Shown one piece after another: positions 4,378-60,000 of a stretch of DNA of 64,000 bases (its first letter is position 1; every line of letters starts with the position of its first letter). The position numbers and the translations under genes are program-made. This stretch comes from Octopus sinensis. Lineage: Eukaryota. The notes under the pieces are model-generated. The model was not told the DNA's origin. It was given only the letters and a program-made list of their open reading frames with translations, and did not search any database. The stretch is taken from NCBI RefSeq assembly GCF_006345805.1, contig NC_043000.1, forward strand, positions 37,448,001-37,512,000, given 5' to 3'.

Positions 4378-5815
4378 CCTCCAGGTAGTATCAGAGGAAC
4401 TCAAGGCAGGATTCCCCTAGGAGCTCCTCTATGCTGATGACCTTGCTCTAATAGCCGAGTCACTATCAGAACTAGAGAAGTTTCAGTTATAGAAGCAAGG
4501 TCTAGAATCAAAGGGCCTTAGAGTAAATCTAGCTAAAACCAAAGTCTTAGTAAGTAGGAAGGCAGACAAATCACAAATTCCTTCAGGTAGATGGCCCTGC
4601 TTGATCTGTACAAAAGGTGTAGGTAGAAACTCCATAAGCTTTAGACACATAAGAGGGGCAGTAATATCAAAGGAAGGCTAACTGGGAAGATAGTTTTTGT
4701 GTGTGGCAAATGCACAGGGGCAATAAACACTGAAAATGTGCAGAAAACAGCTTCCATCACATGCCAGGGGAAAAAAACTAAAAGCAAATGATAGCTTCTG
4801 TTTCCTAGGTGACCAAGCTGAGAATGTAGCTTCTAGAATAAATAGCCTGAGCAAAGTTCAGAGAGCTCCTACCTCTGCTGGTAACAAAGGACCTCTTGCT
4901 CAGAATGAAAGGTAGACTGTATGACACATATGTGAACAGCCATGCTACACAACAGTGAAACATGGGCTGTGACTGCTGAGGATGCAAGAAATGAGGCTAG
5001 TATGTTCTGAGGAATGTGTAATGTCAGCGCATATACACGATATGGGTGTAACTGCCCTGAGAGAAAAGTTGGACATAAGAAGCATCAGATGTGGTGTGCA
5101 AGAGAGACAACTGCACTGGTATGGTCATGTATTGAGTATGGATGAGGACAGCTGTATGAAAAAGTATCACACCCTAACAGTGGAGGGAACCTGTAGAAGA
5201 GGTAGACCCAGGAAGACTTGGGATGAGGTGGTGAAGCATAACTTTCGAACACTGGGCATCATGGAGGTAATGACAAGTGACTGAGACCTTTGGAGATATG
5301 CTGTGCTTGAGAAGGCTCAGCAAGCCAAGTGAGACCGTAACTGGGGCTTATGCCAGTGTTGCATAACTGGCCCATTTAAGAGTATGCCTCAATCATTGGG
5401 CAATAAACTATGCTTGAGAAGACCTGTTGAGTCATGTGAAATCATTGTCATGGCTGATGCCACTACTGCTTGACTGGCACCCGTGCCTGTGGCATGTAAA
5501 ACGCACCATTCAAACATGGCCAATGCCAGTACCGCCCAACTGGCTCTCGTGCCAGTGGCATGTAAAAAGTATCATTCGAACGTGGTTGATGCCAGTTCTA
5601 CCCGACTGGCCCTCATGCCAGTGGCATGTAAAAAGCACCCACCACACTCTTGGAGTGGCTGGTGCCAGGAAGAGCATTCAGCTGCAGAAATCCTGCAAGA
5701 TCAGACAAGAGCCTGGTGCAGCCTTCTGGCTTGCCAGTCCCCAGTCAAACTGTCCAACCCATGCCTGCATGGAAAGTGGATGCCAAGCAACGACAATGAT
5801 GATATATATATATGT
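4378..5815 (+). mobile_element. 5'-truncated RTE-clade LINE (RT C-terminus + repetitive 3'UTR)
   Basis: ELLYADDLALIAESLSELEK...GLESKGLRVNLAKTKV; ORF 4982-5284 ...RLHWYGHVL...RGRPRKTWDEVV; ends ccaacccatgcctgcatggaa...(gat)n. Confidence 0.9.
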
Positions 5816-9458: not shown

Positions 9459-9641
9459 AAAGCACGATTGGCTCGTATCCGCATGGCTAAAAACGCGAGC
9501 GGCGCAGCCTTTATCACTAGCAAGAAACGAACTGAGGAGGTCGTACTTGCTAGAGAAAGTGGTCTTGAAGTAGATGACTACAAAGAAGACATATTCGAGT
9601 TACAGCATCATCATCTCTTAACCTGTCTAGAAAAAACTACT
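9459..9641 (+). CDS. Shal: Shal/Kv4 voltage-gated K+ channel, internal coding exon (proximal C-terminus), phase 0-0, 61 codons
   Basis: tttcag|AAA...ACT|gtaagt; translates KARLARIRMAKNASGAAFITSKKRTEEVVLARESGLEVDDYKEDIFELQHHHLLTCLEKTT, matching the Kv4-diagnostic KARLARIR and FELQHHHLLxCLEKTT motifs. Confidence 0.97.
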
Positions 9642-9946: not shown

Positions 9947-9991
<45 letters not shown>

Positions 9992-11307
9992 ATATTTTAA
10001 CAAGTACATTTTTTAATGGTCTCCTATGATATCATATCATTTCCAAAGCATACCAATTGTCTTACAGAATCATTTGAATTTTTTTTTTTTTTCAATGTTT
10101 TACTAATGAATATTCCTTAATAGCACACAGGTAGTATGTCAACACTTCAAATAGAAGGATTCACAATTTGGGTGAGAATCTTGTCTAGTGCAAATTCTAT
10201 ATTTTGTTATTTTCAAAAGTGACAGCTGGTACACATTTATTGTTCTGGTAAGAATTCAAGAACATGTTGAACTATTTGTACTATGTTATTTCATACATCA
10301 GTATCTCACTTATTTGTTTTCTCTTTCACCACTATATATTTAATTAGATAAAATGTCTGAAGATGTTAATGCTTAAACGTGGTTAAATGTAATCATAATT
10401 CCAAATAAACAAATATGAAATGAAAAAAAGCAACAGATGTTTAAGATGTAATGGTGTTAACCTACTGGCTGAGTGGTGGCTGGTGCATTATGATTCCCAG
10501 TAAAGACGCTTAAATTTCAGAAGTCAAATCTAATTAACTATATATAAGTACCATGATAAAGTACATTTCCTTCTGTAAACATTAAGGGAAGAGAAAACAG
10601 AAGATCAAAAAATATCACATGGTCTATTCAAGAGTAGATGGACACTTCCAGTAAAATTATAGGCATGTACTTTAAAGAAGAAAATGATCCTTAATAATGC
10701 AATTCTGTAACTATGCTTTCATAATCAGATGCATGGTCATTTTCCATCACTTTAGAAATCATAGGCTTCATATCTACAAATTACATTGATACCTGTGGTA
10801 GATTTTAAACTCTTACCCACGAGCCTATAGTTCAGTTCAGTTAAAAGACATCTCCCAAGAATATGATAGAAACACTAATTTATGACAGTGTTTACAAACA
10901 GGTGAGAATATCTTGAAGTTGTGATTTTAATTCACAATTTCAGAGAAAAGCTAAATATAAGTGTAAATTTTCTTGCTACCACTTCTATTCATCATGCAGA
11001 ATACTTCCTTCAGTTTTTTTTAAATTTTAATTCTCTTTTATTGAGTCTAAAAATCAGAGTGAGCAAATGTAGATTTTACCTTTAATTGCTTAGCCATATG
11101 GTTACTATGCCACAAAATATAAATATGGACTAGGTGACAGAGTCTACATGTATAAACTTATACCTGTACTGAATAGATATATGAACCCATGGGGGATACA
11201 CAAATTTTATAATCATATATCCTTTGATGTGTCTTTAATGTTTAATGCAAAATCATTTTCATTTTGTCTTTTAAACGTGCATATATTATTGTTGTATCAT
11301 GCTGTAG

Positions 11308-11424
11308 GGTTTAAATATGGTGCTGCCAGAAGAGTTTGGGAAACAAATATTAGGTCCAGAAGCTGTATTGGACTGGCAGGTGTACTCTTATCCTGCAGAA
11401 AGCTCGGTTGAGGAAGAAAAAACG
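11308..11424 (+). CDS. Shal: Candidate Shal alternative cassette exon A (39 aa)
   Basis: gctgtag|GGT...ACG|gtgaga, 117 nt, phase 0-0, no stops: GLNMVLPEEFGKQILGPEAVLDWQVYSYPAESSVEEEKT; paralogous to 24214-24333. Confidence 0.75.
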
Positions 11425-11954
11425 GTGAGAGTAAAGTGGCACCCTAGATAATCTCCAGTTTTAGTTATCCAACATAGAGACACAAACTACTGCACAATGA
11501 AGTTTTAATTACATCAACCTATAGAAACTTGCTTTGTCTGAGAGCATAAATGATCATTGGAAAAAAGCCGCATGGAAAAGAAACATGAAATCATACATAC
11601 AGCCCTTTGCTATGCATACGAATTATATATATATTTGTATATATGTATATACACACATATATATATATTACTTGTGTGTGTATGTGTGTATGTATATACA
11701 CACATAAATATGCATGCATACATACATCATAGATTTACATTCACGTATACACACACATGAACTATGTTATCCTCATCATTTCTATGTCTCCTTTTTCCAT
11801 ACTGGCACGGTTTGGAAGAGAGATACTGAGGTTTGATACTATCTTTCCTTTGTTTTTCAAGGCAGATATTTTTTCTTGTACTGGTCTTCAACAACAATGA
11901 AAACTATTGAGCTATGAGACATAAAAATGTCAATGACAATGTATAGACACCTAG

Positions 11955-16445: not shown

Positions 16446-16511
16446 GGTTTCTCCACCAGGGGTTCAGATGATTTTACCATTTCTAATCATTTCCAAATGG
16501 CTATATTCCAG
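16446..16511 (+). CDS. Shal: Candidate Shal alternative cassette exon C (22 aa)
   Basis: pyrimidine-rich acceptor ...caattcag|GGT...CAG|gtgagt (consensus donor), 66 nt, phase 0-0: GFSTRGSDDFTISNHFQMAIFQ. Confidence 0.6.
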
Positions 16512-24213: not shown

Positions 24214-24333
24214 GGGTTGAATTCTACTACACGCTTACCATCAAGTATGGAACAAGAAATGCAGTCAATAGAACGTGTCTTAACATGGAACTATTACAAC
24301 TATACAAGTGAAGAGCCTGCTGAACACAAACCG
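24214..24333 (+). CDS. Shal: Candidate Shal alternative cassette exon B (40 aa), paralog of exon A
   Basis: tattctttag|GGG...CCG|gtgaga, 120 nt, phase 0-0: GLNSTTRLPSSMEQEMQSIERVLTWNYYNYTSEEPAEHKP. Confidence 0.75.
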
Positions 24334-37257: not shown

Positions 37258-37416
37258 GACAGGGAATTTACAGAGATGGATATGACTTTTAGTATACCTC
37301 CTAATAAGCCTTCGGAGACACCTCCACCTTCACCTGATCCATCATTGGCATCTTTAGAGCGAAGGAGGATGACAGGATGCTGTACTTGTAGGTTTTCTCC
37401 ACAACGCCGGTTCCTG
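37258..37416 (+). CDS. Shal: Shal/Kv4 coding exon following KTT, phase 0-0, 53 codons
   Basis: ctttcag|GAC...CTG|gtgagt; DREFTEMDMTFSIPPNKPSETPPPSPDPSLASLERRRMTGCCTCRFSPQRRFL resembles invertebrate Shal DREFxE...P.SP...CC segment; phase compatible with 9459-9641. Confidence 0.92.
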
Positions 37417-39299: not shown

Positions 39300-40715
39300 T
39301 TAGTGCTTTCATACTTTGGTAGCAATCATCAGATTTCAAAATGTATTTAACTGACAGTTGAGTTCTTGTCAACTGTAATACCTCTTAGAACACTCCAGCA
39401 AGCTGAATTTTTCGAATGCAGTTTCGACCAATCTGCATGCAGCTTAAACATCATCACATACCGATATCCTGTACTTTGTTTATATTCATAAGTTAAAGAT
39501 ATTTTTTAATCCACATCATTAACTGGTTGTTATATTATTGTTGTTATTTCCATTCAGAACAGGTTTGAACATTTTTATAAACCGTTTTACTTTCATCTTT
39601 CTTCCAATCTCACTTGTGTCATGTAGTTTGTAGAAAGGAAAAATTAGAAACATTTTCTGACCACATGTTTCTGTATGTTCGTTCAATGGAATTTGGCGAA
39701 CATTAGTATTCCAGATTTGTTGTCTGTGGACATGTGAGTGTTCTGATACTGCATTCCCTGTCTTGCCTATATATAGTTCCTCGCGATTCAGGCATTTAAT
39801 GCAATAGATCAAATTTCTGCTTTTGCAGTTTACATCTGCATTTGCGAAAATATGTCCATTTTTTGTTCTAATGTATCTACCAGTATGCATGTAGTAACAT
39901 ATTCCACATCTGTTATTATTATGCTTGTATACTGTGAATGTTTTAGCCTGTTTGTTCATGTTGAATTTTGCCTTTGTTAATAGTTTCTTCAGGTTATGTG
40001 GTTGCCTTTTGCTTAGGATAAGCGTTTGATTAGTTATGTTTTTTTTTTAAATTTTTCACTTTGTTTATGATTGGTAAATTTGTTTTGAAGATGTTCAAAA
40101 TGTTTTGGTTATGTGGATTGTGTGTTACTAAAAATGGTATTGTGTTCCGTTGATGGGTTTGTCTCTTTCGTGTTGCCCTAAGTTGTCCTATAGTTATCTC
40201 TTTTGCTTGTTGTATGTTATTTTCTATAAGTAGGGGAGGGTGTTTTTGCTTGAGCAGAAATCCTTTGAATTTTATGAGTCATGTGGTTCTTATATTTGGA
40301 CCATCTACTATAGTACAAATTTTCATGGCTAGACAGTACAGGATGTTGCATTTAATGTGTTGGGTGGCATGATTTGAAATTTAAGTACTGGTCTGCATCT
40401 GTGCTTTTGTAATAAATATCACTTGTGATTATGGTGTTGTTTTAATTACCATTATGTTAAGAAATGGTAATTGTGAGTTGCTCATTTCTCTTGTGAATTT
40501 GAGACTAGGGTGTAGATTGTTGAGGAGGGTGCTGAATTCTTCCAGATTTTCTTGGGATTTGGTCCAAATTAGGAAGCAGTCTTTGAGGTATCTTTTCCAT
40601 GTGTCCTCTACATGTCTTTTAAAGGTCATGTCGTAGTTCTCTTCAATTTTTTTATTTAGGTTTTGTTCTAAGTATTCCAATACTGAGTTCACGAAAATGC
40701 CGCAATAAAAAACAT
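39300..40715 (-). mobile_element. Decayed Penelope-like element (RT fragment + GIY-YIG endonuclease)
   Basis: 40429-40692: WKRYLKDCFLIW...LNNLHPSLKFTRE...LPFLNI; 39519-39959: RCGIC...NCKSRNLIYCIKC...LYIGKT...FKPVLN. Confidence 0.9.
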
Positions 40716-40915: not shown

Positions 40916-41725
40916 ACAAACTGTGTAGGCTAAATTTGACTGTTTGCATAAAAGGAAAAGAAAATACAGTATCATATTCAAAAATAAAGTATTTCAAAAA
41001 ATCAAAATGTATCAACTAAATTATGACTGGTAGCATAATCAAGGTAGATGCCCTTGGCTTCCACCATAGCCGACTGCTCTGGAATCTTGAACACCTTGAT
41101 CTTGGCAGCCAGCTTGGCCTTGGTTTTCTCAAGCAGAGCAGTTGGTGTCTTTCTCAACTGCACCCCACACATAGTAATCCATAGGATTGCAATTAGGGAA
41201 GTTAGGAGGGTTGCAGGGGAAGTCATAAAAATTCTCCAAAAACTACTTCTGAGATATAGCAAGGAGCTGAACCCTGCTGTCACATACATGACCTTCCAGC
41301 AGCAACCCTCTCAAGTTAAATATTGACCAGACTCCAGCAACTTAACATAATCATCTGATTTGAGCCTAAGGCCCTGTTCAAAGATGTGGGGTAAAATCAT
41401 GTTACCCTCACTGAAGACACAAATACAAGCTGTGTCCCCTCTCCTGCTTCATAGACACCATTGTAGCTTTACAGCGTTCATAGAACATTGAGCTGCAGTC
41501 ATGATGTCAATGTTTTGATACCCGGTGTGAATCATTATGATACAAGTAATACATTTTTAATATTCAGATAACTTCCAGTCCTCCATGTCAGCTAACTTTT
41601 CCACAACTGTGACTTTAATCTTTATGCTATCCAATGCTGTTGACTGTTCACCAATACATCAAACTATTCTTAAAACAAGAAAGGGGACATAAAAGTAGTC
41701 AAATTTTGCTCAAACACCCTGTATA
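40913..41725 (-). mobile_element. maT/DD37D-like Tc1/mariner deletion derivative
   Basis: Right TIR aaattttgctcaaacaccctgta (41701-41723), degenerate left TIR tacaaactgtgtaggctaaatttgact; minus strand PNFPNCNPMDYYVWGAVEKDTN catalytic motif. Confidence 0.75.
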
Positions 41726-41756
41726 TATAATATATATCTCTATTTGTTTATTTATG

Positions 41757-42800
41757 TTTTGGGACCACTACTGTTCATAATGGCCCTCTCAGACATGCCC
41801 TCAGCCACGCAGAGAGCCACGATCACAAGTTATGCAGATGATACAAAAGTTTCACAGGCAATACAGAACCCTGAAGATATTAAGCACCTGCAATGTGAGC
41901 TGGACAAAATATACAAGTGGGCTGAAAAGAATAGCATGCAGTTCAATGCTGAAAAGTTTCAAGCTCTATGCTGTCAGCACACAAAACAAAATGCAATACC
42001 CAATAAATACACTGGACCTGGAGGGACTGCAATCCCAGAGGCACAATCAGTGTGAGACCTGGGTATTTACATGAGTGATGATACAACCTTTCATGTGCAT
42101 GTTGCTAAATTGGCAATGAAATGTAGGCGGCTGACCGGATGGATTCTTAGAACCTTCAGAACAAGAGACCAGGAAACCATGATGGTCCTTTGGAGGACAC
42201 TTGTCCTAAGCCACTTTGAGTATTGCTCTCAGCTAAGGTCACCATCCAGTGTCAAGTTAATCACAGAACTTGAGGCGATCCAACGAAGCTACACGAAGAA
42301 GATAGCCTCTGTGCAGCATATAAGCTATTGGGAAAGATTGAGACTCTATTCCTTAGAGTGTAGGCGAGAAAGATATGCCATAATATACATCTGGAAGATC
42401 CTAGAAGGACTTGTCCCAAACTTTGGCATTGAGAGTTACACAAATGCCAGAACTGGGCGCCACTGCATAGTGCCAAGGACTCCAAATTTGCCATCAAGAT
42501 GTAGGACAAGATACTGTGATAGCCTGGGCTTCCGAGGCCCACAGCTCTTCAATATCCTCCCGAAGAACCTAAGAGACCTGCATGGGGTTGACGCAGATGT
42601 CTTTAAAATGAAACTGGATCTCTTCTTGTCAGGTATCCCAGATGAACCAACTTCACGGCAGGAGGTGCAAATGAGGGCAGCTGCATCGAACTCTCTCATG
42701 CACCAAATGGCAATTGCTAAAAAGCATTCATGAAGTAAAATCATGTAGCAACACCAAATGGCGGTGCCCCAGCATGGCCACAGCTTGTGAGCTGAAACTA
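41757..42800 (+). mobile_element. 5'-truncated CR1-like LINE
   Basis: VLGPLLFI...SYADDTKV...QFNAEKF; ORF 42071-42733 GWILRTF...LVLSHFEYCSQL...LEAIQR...RRER...RGPQLFNILP; short 3'UTR. Confidence 0.9.
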
Positions 42801-46250: not shown

Positions 46251-47065
46251 ATATTAAAAAAATCAATAAAGTCTATCTTACTGAAGAATTACTAGAGGTA
46301 AAAAGTACTGTTTCAAGATAATAATTTTCATAGAACTTAGCAACAGATTTAGTGTACATATTAACATCCACTACAGTTGTAGTTCTTATTTAGTTACCTT
46401 TTTCATAATTCCTAACCAACAAATTTCAATCCTTAACCCATTGCTGAGTTTCATCATTTTTTTCTTTTCTCTTTACAACTACACCATCAATATTTCTTAC
46501 TCCTTACTCTCCACAAATTTTCTCTCTCTCACTATGCTTAAGATATATACAGTTCTGTATATTTAAACATTATTTCACTTTAGCACTTTCTTCTTGTACA
46601 TTCCTTCTAATTACAATTTTTGCTCTTTAAATAAAACTTGAACTGAAGTAAGTTTCCAGAAGTATATTTCTTTTCAATTTAGAAAAGCTTCAATAGGGGA
46701 CAAGGCAAAACTTCCGTGGCACAGGATTAATAATATGCCCTTGTTCTCAGAGGCCTACTAATTTACTAGGCTGCCCATTAATTGTATTGATCCTTTTGAG
46801 GTTCAACATAATTTTCAAACTGATCCTATATTTTTCAATTGCTTATCAATGATTTAGTGAATATTATATTTTTCTCTTTACATACAAACAGTTTAACACT
46901 TGCATAATTGTATTAGAATTCATGTATTTGTATGTAAGTATAAATGTGTAACTGATTGAATACATTCATTCTCTTTTAATTTCTTTCACTCTCTCTCTCT
47001 CTCTCTCTCTCTCTTTACACACACACACACACACACACACAACACACACACACACACACACACAC

Positions 47066-50061
47066 GGACTCTTACATAAAATGTGGCGTCACAAGAAAAG
47101 CAAAAATCAAGATCCTAAAACTAATTTGAAGCTTCCACAGAAATAGTTATAAAAAAAGTAAGAAGCTTAAGACCAAGCCCAACAGCCTCTGCATGTTGTA
47201 CAGTATCCTTCAGTCAGCATCTGCTGACGACAGTAACCAAAACAAATACAACAATCAAGTACACAAAAGTGAAAAGAGCTCTATGGATCAGTATTGAACT
47301 TCTCAAGGAGTACTCTTCCTGATGGCTTTCCATGCTACCCCAGAATTGATGAACTACTGTACCTCAACAGCTAGAGGAGAAACACTCTGGAAATACTGTC
47401 AAGGTTAGGCATGAATATGCCTTCCAATAAACTTAGGAATGAATTTAACATTAACAGGACAACAGAAAATCAAAGCGTCTCTTAGATTTATGGCTGTTAC
47501 ATTTCAAAGGCTATGCTTTTCCAAGCTAAGCACAAGAGAAATCTACAAAATTCCAAATTAGACAGTGAAGGCCTTAAAGCCCCAGACACAAACAAAAGTG
47601 TTGATTATGTTATAAATGTGTGGAAAATATTGCAAATGTTGTCAGCAGCTCCCCCAAGATGTCATTAAGTTGCAATATAGCATTGTTATTGAAAATATAT
47701 ACACTGCCATTCTGAGGGAAGATTGTCCTTGGTTAAATATAGAGAAGATATCCACACATATCAACATAAGGAATACATGTGGAACATTCTTATCAAAACT
47801 TATATCAAGTGCAAATATAACAGATTTGATAAAGTTTTGGTTAGAATAAAAAAAAATGTGCAATCACAGTGGTTATATACTTTGTACAGTATTTGCACAA
47901 TATTTTTTTCAAAGTCGTTGATGAAAAGAATGTTTGCAGAGAACTACTTTGAAATTTTCAGTTTTTTTACTTAAATCATAAATTCACATTTATACCTGCA
48001 CTCAGTTATGTTAATAAATGTCTCAGTGACAATTAAATTAAGAATTCCAGCAATGAAGCATTATTTCTTTGTTAGAACCCAGCTTCTTCCATAGAAGAAG
48101 AATTTAAATTAAATTAAATGAAAAATAACATATATGCATGCATACAGACATACAATCATGCCAAATGCATAACAGAACTACAGTGTAAAATAAAGGATAG
48201 TGGTGGAAAATTCTAATAAAAACAGCAACGCAGTGTAAGCACATTTGGCCAAATTCTGCTCAATGAGACAAAGTGCTAAAGCCATGCACTGTTGTAGAGA
48301 ACAGTTACCCAGCTGATGTGAATATCATAAAAAATTTAGGAAAAAGAACATTTATGGAGAACTAATGAGAAACTTTGCGAAATATTAATTACCAATAAGA
48401 AAATATCAAAAAAATCCTTAATAAAAAAGATCAAACTTGAATGCAGTCTTGTTTCTTATATAATACATTTCAAAGTGTACATCATACACACACACACAAA
48501 CAAACACAAACACTCTCTCTCTCTCACACACACACACCACACACACACACACACATACACAACACACACACACGGACTCTTACATAAAATGTGGCGTCAC
48601 AAGAAAAGCAAAAATCAAGATCCTAAAACTAATTTGAAGCTTCCACAGAAATAGTTATAAAAAAAGTAAGAAGCTTAAGACCAAGCCCAACAGCCTCTGC
48701 ATGTTGTACAGTATCCTTCAGTCAGCATCTGCTGACGACAGTAACCAAAACAAATACAACAATCAAGTACACAAAAGTGAAAAGAGCTCTATGGATCAGT
48801 ATTGAACTTCTCAAGGAGTACTCTTCCTGATGGCTTTCCATGCTACCCCAGAATTGATGAACTACTGTACCTCAACAGCTAGAGGAGAAACACTCTGGAA
48901 ATACTGTCAAGGTTAGGCATGAATATGCCTTCCAATAAACTTAGGAATGAATTTAACATTAACAGGACAACAGAAAATCAAAGCGTCTCTTAGATTTATG
49001 GCTGTTACATTTCAAAGGCTATGCTTTTCCAAGCTAAGCACAAGAGAAATCTACAAAATTCCAAATTAGACAGTGAAGGCCTTAAAGCCCCAGACACAAA
49101 CAAAAGTGTTGATTATGTTATAAATGTGTGGAAAATATTGCAAATGTTGTCAGCAGCTCCCCCAAGATGTCATTAGTTGCAATATAGCATTGTTATTGAA
49201 AATATATACACTGCCATTCTGAGGGAAGATTGTCCTTGGTTAAATATAGAGAAGATATCCACACATATCAACATAAGGAATACATGTGGAACATTCTTAT
49301 CAAAACTTATATCAAGTGCAAATATAACAGATTTGATAAAGTTTTGGTTAGAATAAAAAAAAATGTGCAATCACAGTGGTTATATACTTTGTACAGTATT
49401 TGCACAATATTTTTTTCAAAGTCGTTGATGAAAAGAATGTTTGCAGAGAACTACTTTGAAATTTTCAGTTTTTTTACTTAAATCATAAATTCACATTTAT
49501 ACCTGCACTCAGTTATGTTAATAAATGTCTCAGTGACAATTAAATTAAGAATTCCAGCAATGAAGCATTATTGCTTTGTTAGAACCCAGCTTCTTCCATA
49601 GAAGAAGAATTTAAATTAAATTAAATGAAAAATAACATATATGCATGCATACAGACATACAATCATGCCAAATGCATAACAGAACTACAGTGTAAAATAA
49701 AGGATAGTGGTGGAAAATTCTAATAAAAACAGCAACGCAGTGTAAGCACATTTGGCCAAATTCTGCTCAATGAGACAAAGTGCTAAAGCCATGCACTGTT
49801 GTAGAGAACAGTTACCCAGCTGATGTGAATATCATAAAAATTAGGAAAAAGAACATTTATGGAGAACTAATGAGAAACTTTGCGAAATATTAATTACCAA
49901 TAAGAAAATATCAAAAAAATCCTTAATAAAAAAGATCAAACTTGAATGCAGTCTTGTTTCTTATATAATACATTTCAAAGTGTACATCATACACACACAC
50001 ACACAAACAAACACAAACACTCTCTCTCTCTCACACACACACACAACACACACACACACAC
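47066..50061. repeat. Near-identical tandem duplication, period 1508 bp
   Basis: 47066-48573 vs 48574-50061; (CT)n(CA)n microsatellites at all three junctions; only a few differences seen, mostly 1-bp indels. Confidence 0.95.
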
Positions 50062-55029: not shown

Positions 55030-55925
55030 CTAGTCATGTATCTAGAATCAGTTATGATAGAGCAGTATCATGCACACCACATCTGATGCCTCTTATACCC
55101 AACTTTTTTCTCAAGATGTTTACTCTCTGTCGCTGCATAACCAGCAAAGCATACTAGCTTCACTTCTTTCAAGCCTTTGCATGTCCTCAGCAGTCACAGC
55201 CCATGTTTCAGTCATGTAGCATGGCTGTTCACACACAGGCATCATACAATCTACCTTCCACTCTGAGGGAGAGGCCCTTAGTTACCAACAGCAGTAGGAG
55301 CTCTCTGAACTTTGCCCAGCCTCTTCTTATTCTAGCAGCTATGCTCTCAGAACATACATCTCCACTACTGACTTGGCCACCTAGATAACAGAAGCTATCA
55401 ACTACTTCTATCTGTTCCCACCTGGCATTTGATGGAGTCTATTTACTGTACATTTTTAGTATTTATTGTATCTGTGCGCCTTCCACACACAAAAACTATT
55501 TTCCCTCTTAACCTTCCTCTGATCTGTCCATAGCACCTTTTATGTGTCCATAGCTTACACTGTTTACTTCTTATGGAGCTTCTATGCCTTTTCTACAGAT
55601 TGAGCAGGTTCATATACCTGAAGGGGTTTGTGATTTGTCTGCTTTCCTACTTACTAAGACTTTGGTTTTTACAAGATTAAATCTATGGCCCTTTGATTCT
55701 AGACCTTGCTTCCACACCTGATATTTCTTCTCTAGTTCTGGTGGTGATTTGGCTATAAAAGCCAAGTTATCAGTGTAGAGGAGCTCCTGGGAGCACCCCA
55801 ACTTAAATTCCTCTGTTATTGCCTGGTGGATTATGATGAACATGAGAAGGCTGGAGACTGATCCTTGATGAAACCCTACTTGTACCCTGAATTCATCATT
55901 ACACCCATTGCTAATCTTCACTTGA
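55030..55925 (-). mobile_element. RTE-clade LINE RT fragment
   Basis: EFRVQVGFHQGSVSSLLMFII...ELLYTDNLAFIA...GLESKG. Confidence 0.9.
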
Positions 55926-57229
55926 TATATATAACAAATGATGGATAGGTATCAATTCATTACAACTGTTTCCAACAAATTTTTTAATTGATTAATGGGT
56001 GCATTATCTCATTATAAAAAAACGTTATCTTCAGACGAATACATGAACTACATTATTAAGAACATTTTAAAACATTTAAAATCCATGGTATGTGCATATT
56101 TTGTGATTTCATAATCTTTGTTGATCACAGAATGAGATTGCCAAATCAAAACAAATTAAATGGTGGTTTTATAGCAGAGGAGAGCACTGTGTCATATGTG
56201 GGTAGGGTGTATTTAAGATTTATAGTCTTGAAGGTGGTTAGTCAGCATGGTTAGTGGTGGTGGTGGTGGTGGTGGGAGGGGGAATGGACAGCTGGGTGTC
56301 TCCTCACCACAATGAAGAAAGAATGAATCTTATATATATATATATATATAATCTTAGGTTCTTGTAGTGTATAAGTATCCTCATTATTATTTGATTCATG
56401 GGCAATTGTCAGAGTTAGTTTTTATCCTTTCTGTTATTGTTGGTTAACATCATCTAGTGGTCAAATAAATTTTCACACTTCAAACGAAATTTGGTACCAG
56501 TGGCGTGGTTGTACTGACTGACTACTATCTAGATAAGACAATTTGCTATATATGGCCCTACCTAACTTATTAACGTTATCTTCTTCTTCTTCTTCTTCTA
56601 TATCCCCCATCCCACATGATCTCTATGTTACTCATCCGATTACCACACTTTTGTTTACTTTTTATTTCCCCCTGATATAAGCTCCCCCCCCCCCCAAAAA
56701 AAAAAAACAGTGTCAGAAGGCACACAATGTGACAGCACTCCTTTGATGAAAGTCTGAGGAAGTGCCATTCTAATGTTTAAAACTGCAAACATTACATAGA
56801 TTTTCTCTTTGAAATTTTGCATAAACTGGCATTGCAAGCAGAGTTGGTACAAAAACACTTGTAATGAATCATTAAAGATATGTTAAAGAATTTCTTTGTC
56901 TTATTATTTGGATTGTGTGTGTGTGTGTGCACGGTAGCATATACACAAACGTACACAGTTACATGACATATAATATATATTACGTTAAAATTCTTATAAG
57001 CCAATACAATGGGGATTGAAATAAAGGAGTAAAAACTATTGTAACAAAGACAGGACAACAGTTTACACTTTACTTATATGTCAGTATTTTGAGTGCGAAT
57101 ACGATTTTGCCTGAATAATATCTAGGATGGTGTTGAGTTGGTACTTTGTGATATATACACAGGCCTGGCTATGTGGTAAGAAGCTTGCTTCCCAACCACA
57201 TGGTTTCAGGTTCAGTCCCACAGCTACAA

Positions 57230-60000
57230 TTTCCATTTGATTTTCATTTTGATGTTGATGTACTTAACACAATAGGTCTCCTCAAGTACAGCAGGTTGCC
57301 CTACGATCCAAGGTATTTTTGAATGGGCTGGGGCTGGTTATGTGAAACTGGTGTAGGATAAAGCTGTGAACTCACTTTATTTGCTGGGTCTTCGCAGTCA
57401 CAGCATATCTCCAGAGGTCTTGGTCTTTTGTCATTGCCTCTGTGAGGCCCAACGTTCAAGGGTCATGCTTGACCACCTCATCCCATGTCTTCCTACATCT
57501 ACATCTACTCTGGATTCCTTCAACTGTTTGGGAGTGGCGCTTCTTCACACATCCCTCCTCATCCATCCATAGTACATGACCATACCAGTGCAAACGCCTC
57601 TCTTGCATGCCACATCCTTTGCTTCTTATGTCCAACTTTTCTCTCAGGGCGCTTACACTCTGTTGTGTGTGCACACTGACATTACACATCCAGCGGATCA
57701 TGCTAGCTTCATTTCTTTCAAGCCTTCGCATGTCCTCCACAGTCACTGCCCATGTTTCACTACCGTGAAGCATAGCAGGTTGCACATATGCTTCGCACAA
57801 TCTACCTTTCACTCTGAGCGAGAGGCTCTTTGTCACCAGTAGAGGTAGAAGCTTTCTAAAGTTTGCCCAGGCTATTCTTATTCTAGTGGTAACACACTCT
57901 GAGCATCCACCCCAACTATTAACTTGGTCACCTAGGTAGTGGAAGGTATCAACTACTTCTAGTTTCTTCCCCTGGAGTGTGATGGAATCTGTTTTCTGAG
58001 CATCTGTGGTGTTTATTGCTCCTGTGCATCTGCCACACACAGAAGCTATCTTCTTGGTTAATCTTTCTTTGATGTGTCCATAGCTTACACTAGGTACATC
58101 TTATGGAGTTTCTACCTACACCAGGTCTACACATCGAGCAGGGCCACCTACCTGAGTGGGTATGTGATGTGTTCGCCTTCTTACTTACTAGAACTTTGGT
58201 CTTTGCTACATTGATTCTAAGGCCTTTTGATTCTAAACATTGCTTCCACACCCGAAATGTCTTTTTCTAGTTCTGGTAGTGATTCTGCTACGAGGGCCAG
58301 GTCATCAGCATAGAGGAGCTCCCAGGGGCAACCCAGCTTGAATTCCTCTGTTATTGCCTGGAGGACTATGATAAATAAAAGGGGCTGAGGGCTGAACCTT
58401 GGTGGACCCCTACTTCTACCCAGAATTCTTCACTATACTAATTTCCAATCCTAACCTTACTAAGGGCCTCTCTGTATAGGGCCTGTACAGCCCGTATTAA
58501 CCATTTATCAATCCCCAGTTTCTGCATTGCCCACCAGATAAGGGATCAGGGGATCCTGTCAAAGGCTTTATCCAAGTCCACAAAAGCTAAATATAAGGGT
58601 TTATCTTTAGCTAGATATTTCTCCTGCAGTTGTCGAATCAGGAATATGGTATCAGTGGTGCTTCTACCCAGCACATAACCGAACTGCATTTCATCTAAGC
58701 AGACTCTCACCCTATAACCCTCTCCGGGACCTTCATCACCTGATCCAGCAGTTTGATACCCTGTAGTTATTTCTATCTGGAGCATCACCTTTACCCTTGT
58801 AGCAGTTGACTATGGTGCTGCTACGCCAGTCATTGGGTATGACTCCATCATGAATTACCTGGTTTACAATGCGGGTGACTAGGCCAGAGCCCACACCACC
58901 AGATATTTTAAGCATCCTAGCAGTGATTTCTGATGGGCCGGGGGCTTTTCCTGGCTTCATACCCTTAATTTGCTTTATCTACAAGGGAGCTGTCTATTTG
59001 GATAGCTGGTCCTTCTACTGGGTCAAGATTTAGCAGGATCTCCTTCCATTCATTGTCCATGTTCAGCCTTATCAAAATGCCTTATTCAAGCCATTTTCTT
59101 TTCCGAATGATTAAAAGCAAGTGCACCATCATCCATGCGGTCACATTTCTCTCCTGTGACATCACAATTTTCTCTCACACACTGTCTTGTAATCCAAAAT
59201 ACCTCAGTTCTTTGGTTCTCACGTTGCTGGACATTGGCAAACTTCTTTTCTGCTTTGCCCGTGGTTATGTATACCTGCCACCCAGCCTCCTTCTTTTTTG
59301 GATTGGTCTACTTCTTGGTATCCTTCTGGCTTCGAGCCTAAAGTCACTAATAACTAGCCTATGCTGAAGGGTCCATTCTCCATTCAGGAGGGTTTTTGTA
59401 TCTAAGAGCAACCCTGTATCCTGCTGTGTGGTGAGGATGAAATCAATCTGGCTAGCAGAGTCACCTGATTGATAGGTTATCAGGTGGCTGTCTGGTTTCC
59501 TGAAATTAGTGTTGTAGATTAAAAGGTTACATGCATCACAGAACTCCAGTAGCCTAGTTCCCTTGTCATTTCTGGAACCAATACCATGGCCCCCATGTAC
59601 ACCAGTGAAGATACCGGATTGCCACCCAATATGCCCATTAAAATCTGCAGCTGCAAAGATGAGGTCATTACCACTCGTCTTTGAGGTAGCCTGTAGAAGG
59701 GTTTCATAAAAATGGTCCTTCTCATCATTTGGTAGGCCTGCTTGTTGGGTGTAGGCAGAGATAATTGTAGCTGTGCTGTTCTGCAGGACCAGCCTAAGCC
59801 TAAGCACACTGTCACATACTCTGACAACCTCTATGACTTTATCTACCCATTTCTCCGCAAGGGGTATGCCTACACCCCCCATTCCATCTGTGTTACCTTG
59901 CCAGAAGATTTTGTATTTATGTGCCTTGCCTGTGAGGACCCTAGCTGAAGCTCCTCTCTATCTTACCTCATGTATGCATTACACATTGACATGTCTCCTG
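57230..60000 (-). mobile_element. Near-full-length decayed RTE-clade LINE (APE endonuclease + RT)
   Basis: 59265-59882 GGVGI...IISAYT...DFNGHIG...QIDFIL (APE); 58960-57456 GKAPGPS...QFGYV.GRSTTD...FVDLDKAFDRIP...YADD...TWDEVVKHD. Confidence 0.93.

Follow-up and report, generated by a model that had tools for sequence, protein, structure and literature searches.

Does the long intron in the C-terminal coding region of an octopus Shal/Kv4 channel gene hold a genuine coding exon, and if so, is that exon used in every channel or only in some? The question is raised by a 117-nt segment, here called exon A, which a first-pass annotation had proposed as a cassette exon of a channel gene. The excitability of neurons and muscle is shaped by the fast transient A-type potassium current, which flows through Kv4/Shal channels, and a mammalian optional exon at the same junction alters the control of the channel by auxiliary subunits and kinases. 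If octopus has a conserved and duplicated optional exon at this very position, a regulatory insert would have evolved there more than once, and the isoforms with and without exon A would provide a concrete pair for cephalopod neurophysiology.

The locus and the boundaries of exon A

The window, by which we mean the whole 64,000-nt stretch analysed, contains the 3' portion of Shal/Kv4 (KCND), a potassium-channel gene of Octopus sinensis; neither the pore/S6 exons nor the last coding exon is within it. The exon at 9459-9641, which terminates in CLEKTT (last letters ...HHHLLTCLEKTT), codes for the distal extension of S6 together with the C-terminal helix that binds KChIP. When searched against PDB chains with phmmer, it matched Kv4.2 residues 426-489 (E 9e-8) and Kv4.3 residues 424-487 (E 7e-7), the C-terminal segment typical of Kv4 (KARLARIR...HHHLLxCLEKTT), and it was the sole match in the window to an approximate Kv4.2 query in a tblastn search. 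The next constitutive exon is the counterpart of the vertebrate NHEF...TCCSRR exon and stands directly after CLEKTT in nearly all Shal proteins retrieved. Both exons are 100% identical to the RefSeq protein XP_036358514.1, which has the tail of the Pfam Ion_trans domain and DUF3399, and to the protein P0002, in which all the Pfam domains of the Kv4 type are present (Shal-type N-terminus, BTB/T1, Ion_trans and DUF3399). Judged by these similarities, the gene is the Shal/Kv4 (KCND) gene of O. sinensis. The features considered first are the following, with a slash marking each splice junction:

9459..9641, + strand: constitutive Shal/Kv4 exon (KARLARIRMAKNAS...FELQHHHLLTCLEKTT), 61 codons, phase 0-0, ttcag/AAA and ACT/gtaagt
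11272..11307, + strand: acceptor region of exon A (tattattgttgtatcatgctgtag), conserved above the level of the surrounding intron
11308..11424, + strand: exon A, acidic cassette exon directly after CLEKTT, 117 nt, 39 codons, phase 0-0
11425..11451, + strand: donor gtgagagt and read-through tail VRVKWHPR followed by TAA (11449-11451), intronic
37258..37416, + strand: next constitutive exon (DREFTEMDMTF...SPDPSLASLERRRMTGCCTCRFSPQRRFL), 53 codons, tttcag/GAC and CTG/gtgagt

Exon A lies within the 27.6-kb intron that separates the CLEKTT exon from the DREF exon. It starts at 11308 (tgctgtag/GGT) and ends at 11424 (ACG/gtgagagt), and its stop-free, frame-preserving sequence encodes GLNMVLPEEFGKQILGPEAVLDWQVYSYPAESSVEEEKT, with a net charge of -6. 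Its GC content is 43.6%, compared to 30-33% in its flanks, and matches the level of the two constitutive exons (43.7% and 46.9%). The ag/G and ACG/gtgaga boundaries, the 39 open codons and the acidic, protein-like composition in an AT-rich intron described by the first-pass annotation are all borne out by the sequence, as is its remark that the exon had been missed by the program-made list of open reading frames, which calls a different frame at this position (11148..11411). In a related octopod (L006, below), indels and stop codons disrupt that ORF, which is spurious. None of seven ORFs from the window, including the alternative-frame ORF of 87 aa and the in-frame, M-start ORFs of exon A and of a second exon described below (C), had an exact match in the protein collection.

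Splice signals and an open frame by themselves are weak evidence for exon A, because the same intron contains 474 open AG...GT segments of 20-70 codons in phase 0 that make up a chance background, and because the pyrimidine tract of the exon A acceptor is only moderate. These numbers, together with the fact that no transcript with exon A appeared in the protein searches (lengths 32-241 and 393-1251 aa), would favor the view that exon A is a pseudo-exon, in which an open frame happens to lie between sequences resembling splice sites, was picked by an ab initio predictor and is never used. Exon A is raised above this background by comparison with other species and by the presence of a paralogue, which are considered in turn below.

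The rest of the window contains several further elements. Remains of retrotransposons are located at 55600-59900 (minus strand), 41700-42730 (plus), 39522-39959 (minus) and 4500-5300 (plus), and among them is an endonuclease-reverse transcriptase ORF (PF14529) at 59268-59882 on the minus strand. Others are reverse-transcriptase-like ORFs that carry a YADD motif and weakly match GIY-YIG, and these may indicate a Penelope-like element. At approximately 47050-49500 a unit of 1508 bp is duplicated in tandem, giving two identical ORFs (47723..47974 and 49230..49481); the duplication may be genuine or may result from misassembly.

Selection on the reading frame

When the 47-codon open frame was compared with 1.84 billion representative proteins, two short ORFs were identified on unspliced contigs of other cephalopods, and the DNA of both ORFs' contigs was used for comparison: L006-L010, from a near relative (five sequencing runs), and L011, from a distant one. 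A further match from this search, the protein P0133, is repetitive and unrelated, and it was discarded as fortuitous.

The contigs of the near relative, a related octopod, are colinear with the window from 9964 to 11621. The intron is 86.4% identical between the two species (13.6% diverged) and contains indels, whereas exon A is identical to L006 at 114 of 117 positions and has none (binomial P = 4e-5 for at most three changes over this length). The three changes, GGG>GGA, GAC>GAT and TCG>TCA, are all synonymous (dN 0, dS 0.13), so that the synonymous rate equals the intronic rate, and the probability of observing no non-synonymous change is 1.3e-6. That all three would strike third codon positions of a single frame has a probability of 0.009.

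The contig of the distant species can be aligned to the window at 11284-11443 only. Its orthologue of exon A is again 117 nt long, lies between cag and gtgagc, and encodes GINMILPEEFEKKNSEPEPVLGWQVYTYPAESSADEEKP. Of the 30 differences from exon A, 15 are synonymous (P = 3e-4), with dN 0.18, dS 1.32 and a dN/dS of approximately 0.14. The AG acceptor, the GT donor, a length that is a multiple of three and the lack of an in-frame stop hold in the window, in L006 and in L011. The reading frame of exon A is therefore, as judged from these substitution patterns, under purifying selection in two other species. The first-pass annotation had named synonymous-biased substitution across species as the test of its proposal; the comparison came out in favor of the exon at both distances, and frame-breaking indels were absent.

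For comparison, the upstream exon of the window and that of another cephalopod (L001-L005) share 98% identity in protein and 78.6% in DNA, with synonymous sites saturated, and the KChIP-binding segment is conserved far more strongly than exon A (67% protein identity to L011). The L001-L005 contigs stop about 160 nt past the upstream exon, short of exon A.

The substitution patterns in the near and distant relatives do not fit a pseudo-exon. An unused segment would hardly change solely at synonymous sites in an intron that has diverged by 13.6%, nor form an alignable island in a distant species with the exact length, splice sites and a dN/dS near 0.14, and we regard a pseudo-exon as very improbable. 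The same patterns argue against a purely non-coding element, for instance an RNA, a regulator of splicing or an enhancer within the intron, that would be conserved for reasons other than protein. In support of such an element, the flanking 25-50 nt also show an unusual degree of conservation. In the acceptor region (11272-11307), 32 positions are identical to L006, with 2 mismatches and a 2-nt indel, and the last 25 nt are identical. However, regulated alternative exons typically have such flanks, and a non-coding element does not explain substitutions that fall at the third codon positions of one frame, or a synonymous rate of 0.13, equal to that of the intron, alongside a non-synonymous rate of zero. 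A non-coding element in place of a coding exon is accordingly hard to credit. On the donor side, 46 of 50 compared positions at 11425-11475 are identical in the related octopod, including a perfect run of 23 nt at approximately 11450-11472, a pattern typical of regulated alternative exons.

A third alternative accepts exon A as coding but makes it a terminal exon. The first-pass annotation had noted that translation past the donor yields VRVKWHPR before a stop, 27 nt in all with the stop included, and this is correct; it had gone on to suggest that a truncated channel would result. With intronic polyadenylation, the channel would end after ...EEEKTVRVKWHPR and this short tail. The stop is found 8 codons past the donor in the near relative as well as in the window, as would suit such a product. 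However, the tail varies (P>L and R>K, giving VRVKWHLK and a stop in L006) while the peptide of the exon is unchanged, and in L011 (P0132) the stop comes 27 codons on, after an unrelated tail. The GTGAG donor is kept in all three species, arguing for its use in splicing, and no truncated protein of this kind was found in the representative-protein or word-based protein searches. The suggestion of a truncated channel is left unsupported by a tail that is not conserved, and we consider it highly unlikely; exon A is better read as an internal coding exon.

Probable optional inclusion of exon A

A protein search with padded queries retrieved XP_036358514.1, annotated as 'potassium voltage-gated channel subfamily D member 1 [Octopus sinensis]' (397 aa, GCA_006345805.1). 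It is 100% identical to the window over the upstream exon, exon A, two further candidate exons (B and C, below) and the downstream exon, in that order. Exon A is thus already present, with exact boundaries, in an automated public gene model. The model presents one product, which contains A, B and C, and, in contrast to the present analysis, is silent on their optional use, conservation and paralogy. Its first 40 residues are an unrelated peptide, after which the channel is entered in mid-pore (LYGDMVP, not GYGDMVP), and the O. sinensis gene model, with a gene range of 116.5 kb, is partial or split. Because of this spurious N-terminus, XP_036358514.1 is not fully trustworthy, and its internal exons could be ab initio predictions.

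The other Shal sequences that were retrieved lack exon A. Isoform X2 of O. bimaculoides (XP_052822834.1), about 20 distinct ORFs of 589 aa from assembled transcripts of approximately 2.5 kb in another cephalopod, and further molluscan Shal proteins all join CLEKTT directly to DREF, these exon-skipping forms all coming from species related to O. sinensis. Since the other Shal proteins and transcripts retrieved join CLEKTT to DREF, the inclusion of exon A is probably optional. Skipping is the major form of the mRNA, and inclusion is documented only by the RefSeq model: no other protein with spliced A, B or C was found by word-based searches of a collection of 5.8 billion proteins (lengths 32-241 and 393-1251 aa), which leaves XP_036358514.1, a computational model, as the sole spliced sequence containing exon A. 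Its presence in mRNA is suggested by this model and by selection on its frame.

If the RefSeq model were simply right, O. sinensis would always carry A, B and C, and exon A would be constitutive in this species. XP_036358514.1 is indeed the only O. sinensis product retrieved, and it has all three exons. However, the O. bimaculoides isoform X2 skips all three and is 100% identical in the shared C-terminal part, the transcript ORFs of another cephalopod and the other molluscan proteins retrieved skip them also, and the insert interrupts the conserved DUF3399 domain. There is very little chance, in our estimation, that exon A is constitutive. With selection on its frame, its presence in XP_036358514.1 and its absence from O. 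bimaculoides X2 and the transcript ORFs, the proposal of a cassette exon in a channel gene has held up well, and we consider it quite likely that exon A is a real, selected and optionally included coding exon of Shal/Kv4. For annotation, this would mean that the internal exons of XP_036358514.1 are real but probably not constitutive.

The 589-aa transcript-derived Shal ORFs of the one cephalopod also differ among themselves (P0003 vs. P0006, and others) by I>V, S>G, N>S, E>G and T>A. A-to-I RNA editing, a frequent process in the channel mRNAs of cephalopods, would be expected to produce such changes.

Duplication within the intron

Two further segments of the intron that appear in XP_036358514.1 were compared with exon A:

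16446..16511, + strand: candidate cassette exon B (GFSTRGSDDFTISNHFQMAIFQ), 22 codons, phase 0-0, strong sites ttcag/G and CAG/gtgagt, passes the strict splice filter
24214..24333, + strand: exon C (GLNSTTRLPSSMEQEMQSIERVLTWNYYNYTSEEPAEHKP), 40 codons (120 nt), phase 0-0

Exon B lies between A and C in the model and has no similarity to either by local alignment against shuffled sequences. In contrast, the peptides of A and C align with a BLOSUM62 local score of 57, compared to 19.9 +/- 4.1 for shuffled sequences, none of which reached it in 5000 trials (z approximately 9), and a tblastn search of the window with exon A detected exon C (E 9e-4). The similarity is confined to frame 0/0, with other pairs of frames scoring 24 or less, and identity by codon position is 0.39, 0.58 and 0.37, highest at second positions. 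The DNA flanking A and C cannot be aligned, and no third paralogue was found within the window. The L011 exon shares 67% amino-acid identity with A and 40% with C; since it is closer to A than to C, the duplication that produced A and C predates the split from the L011 species. By these comparisons, A and C are paralogues from an old tandem duplication. Their frame-specific paralogy counts further against a pseudo-exon, and a non-coding element would not be expected to resemble exon C at the amino-acid level only and in one frame. Transposon-derived copying was also considered for A, B and C and was ruled out, there being no DNA-level repeat copies elsewhere in the window.

Paralogous exons that share a phase and hardly differ in length (117 vs. 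120 nt) are the usual signature of mutually exclusive splicing in ion-channel genes. A transcript might accordingly contain A, C or neither, and the A-B-C string of the RefSeq model, which is partly wrong elsewhere, would then be an artefact of merging. However, the reading frame survives the inclusion of both exons, so exclusivity is not enforced, and the two are 12.8 kb apart with exon B between them. The sole spliced model, a computational one, includes both. We regard a mutually exclusive pair as rather unlikely.

A possible regulatory role

If spliced in, exon A would add 39 mostly acidic residues to the cytoplasmic C-terminus of the channel and leave the reading frame unchanged. The insertion would separate the HHHLL.CLEKTT helix from the (N/D)xEF loop that follows it, and Pfam DUF3399, which runs unbroken through residues 466-531 of the skipping isoform, is interrupted at this junction in the model that includes the exon. 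In the structure of Kv4.2 with KChIP1, the segment S472-D495 lies in the crevice of KChIP and F493 takes part in the contact (PMC8566240). F493 belongs to the exon that follows the CLEKTT junction, and because S472-D495 spans this junction, a cassette placed there splits the segment captured by KChIP. Exon A would be expected to tune control by KChIP-like auxiliary subunits, setting the size of the current and its inactivation, as the insert of the mammalian channel Kv4.3L does. We put forward this tuning of KChIP-type regulation as a plausible role, although one whose likelihood falls somewhat short of even. Phosphorylation and palmitoylation downstream might also be affected, and the CC motif is kept in the next exon of octopus (TGCCTCRF). 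The properties of the pore are not expected to be affected. Exon A also contains a conserved acidic cluster with serines, SS(V/A)(E/D)EE, which by consensus alone we take to be a candidate CK2-type phosphorylation site.

More speculatively, exons A and C, and perhaps B, may form a module of optional exons specific to the octopod lineage, placed at the very site of the Kv4.3L insert, which vertebrates would have evolved independently. Such a module would amount to convergent, splice-controlled tuning of the A-type current, alongside the heavy RNA editing of cephalopod channels, and the choice between A and C would perhaps be tissue-specific or mutually exclusive. This wider proposal is tentative, and on present evidence we lean against it. 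A search of the literature found no published work on Shal splicing in cephalopods.

Comparison with known systems

The closest counterpart of exon A is the optional exon of KCND3 that distinguishes Kv4.3L from Kv4.3S. It encodes 19 residues (GLSYLVDDPLLSVRTSTIK, residues 488-506), begins after residue 487 and alters the effects of KChIP2, and the vertebrate optional exon has been described as unique to Kv4.3 (PMC5296356). The insert also affects palmitoylation of C546/547 (bioRxiv 10.64898/2026.07.03.735752). The long and short forms differ in their regulation by KChIP2, KCNE and PKC and in palmitoylation; with the insert, augmentation by KChIP2 is weaker, inactivation is slower, a PKC site is added and the downstream CC motif is less palmitoylated (PMC5296356; bioRxiv 10.64898/2026.07.03.735752). 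Exon A and the Kv4.3L insert share the point of insertion, after HHLLxCLEKTT and before (N/D)xEF. Each is a cassette that lengthens the cytoplasmic C-terminus close to S6 and keeps the reading frame, and each starts with Gly-Leu. However, exon A is twice as long (39 aa), is strongly acidic, and is accompanied in its intron by the paralogue C and the candidate B. The two peptides show no similarity in sequence, as the alignment of exon A with GLSYLVDDPLLSVRTSTIK has a score of 13 that was equalled by 3387 of 5000 shuffles, and B and C are likewise without similarity to the vertebrate insert. It therefore seems that exon A and the Kv4.3L insert probably had independent origins, and that their likeness is positional and functional, probably a case of convergence.

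Extra residues at the CLE(K/R)TT junction are also present in predicted proteins of Owenia fusiformis (23 aa), Macrostomum lignano (17 aa) and Mytilus species (14 aa). These inserts come from gene-model predictions; they occupy the same Shal junction as exon A, but their sequences are unrelated. The Mytilus proteins with the 14-aa insert skip the DREF exon, as does isoform X3 of Haliotis. Taken together, the inserts at this junction suggest that its intron has repeatedly gained optional exons, in several phyla.

Classic pairs of mutually exclusive exons are found in voltage-gated sodium and calcium channel genes. Exons A and C resemble these tandem pairs in being in-frame paralogues of near-equal length within one intron. 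However, the classic pairs encode transmembrane segments and exactly one member is always included, whereas A and C belong to the cytoplasmic tail and the main isoform has neither. What is noteworthy about exon A, in comparison with these systems, is that it occupies the insertion site of Kv4.3L once more and that a duplication gave rise to A and C; in other respects it is an ordinary feature of a channel gene.
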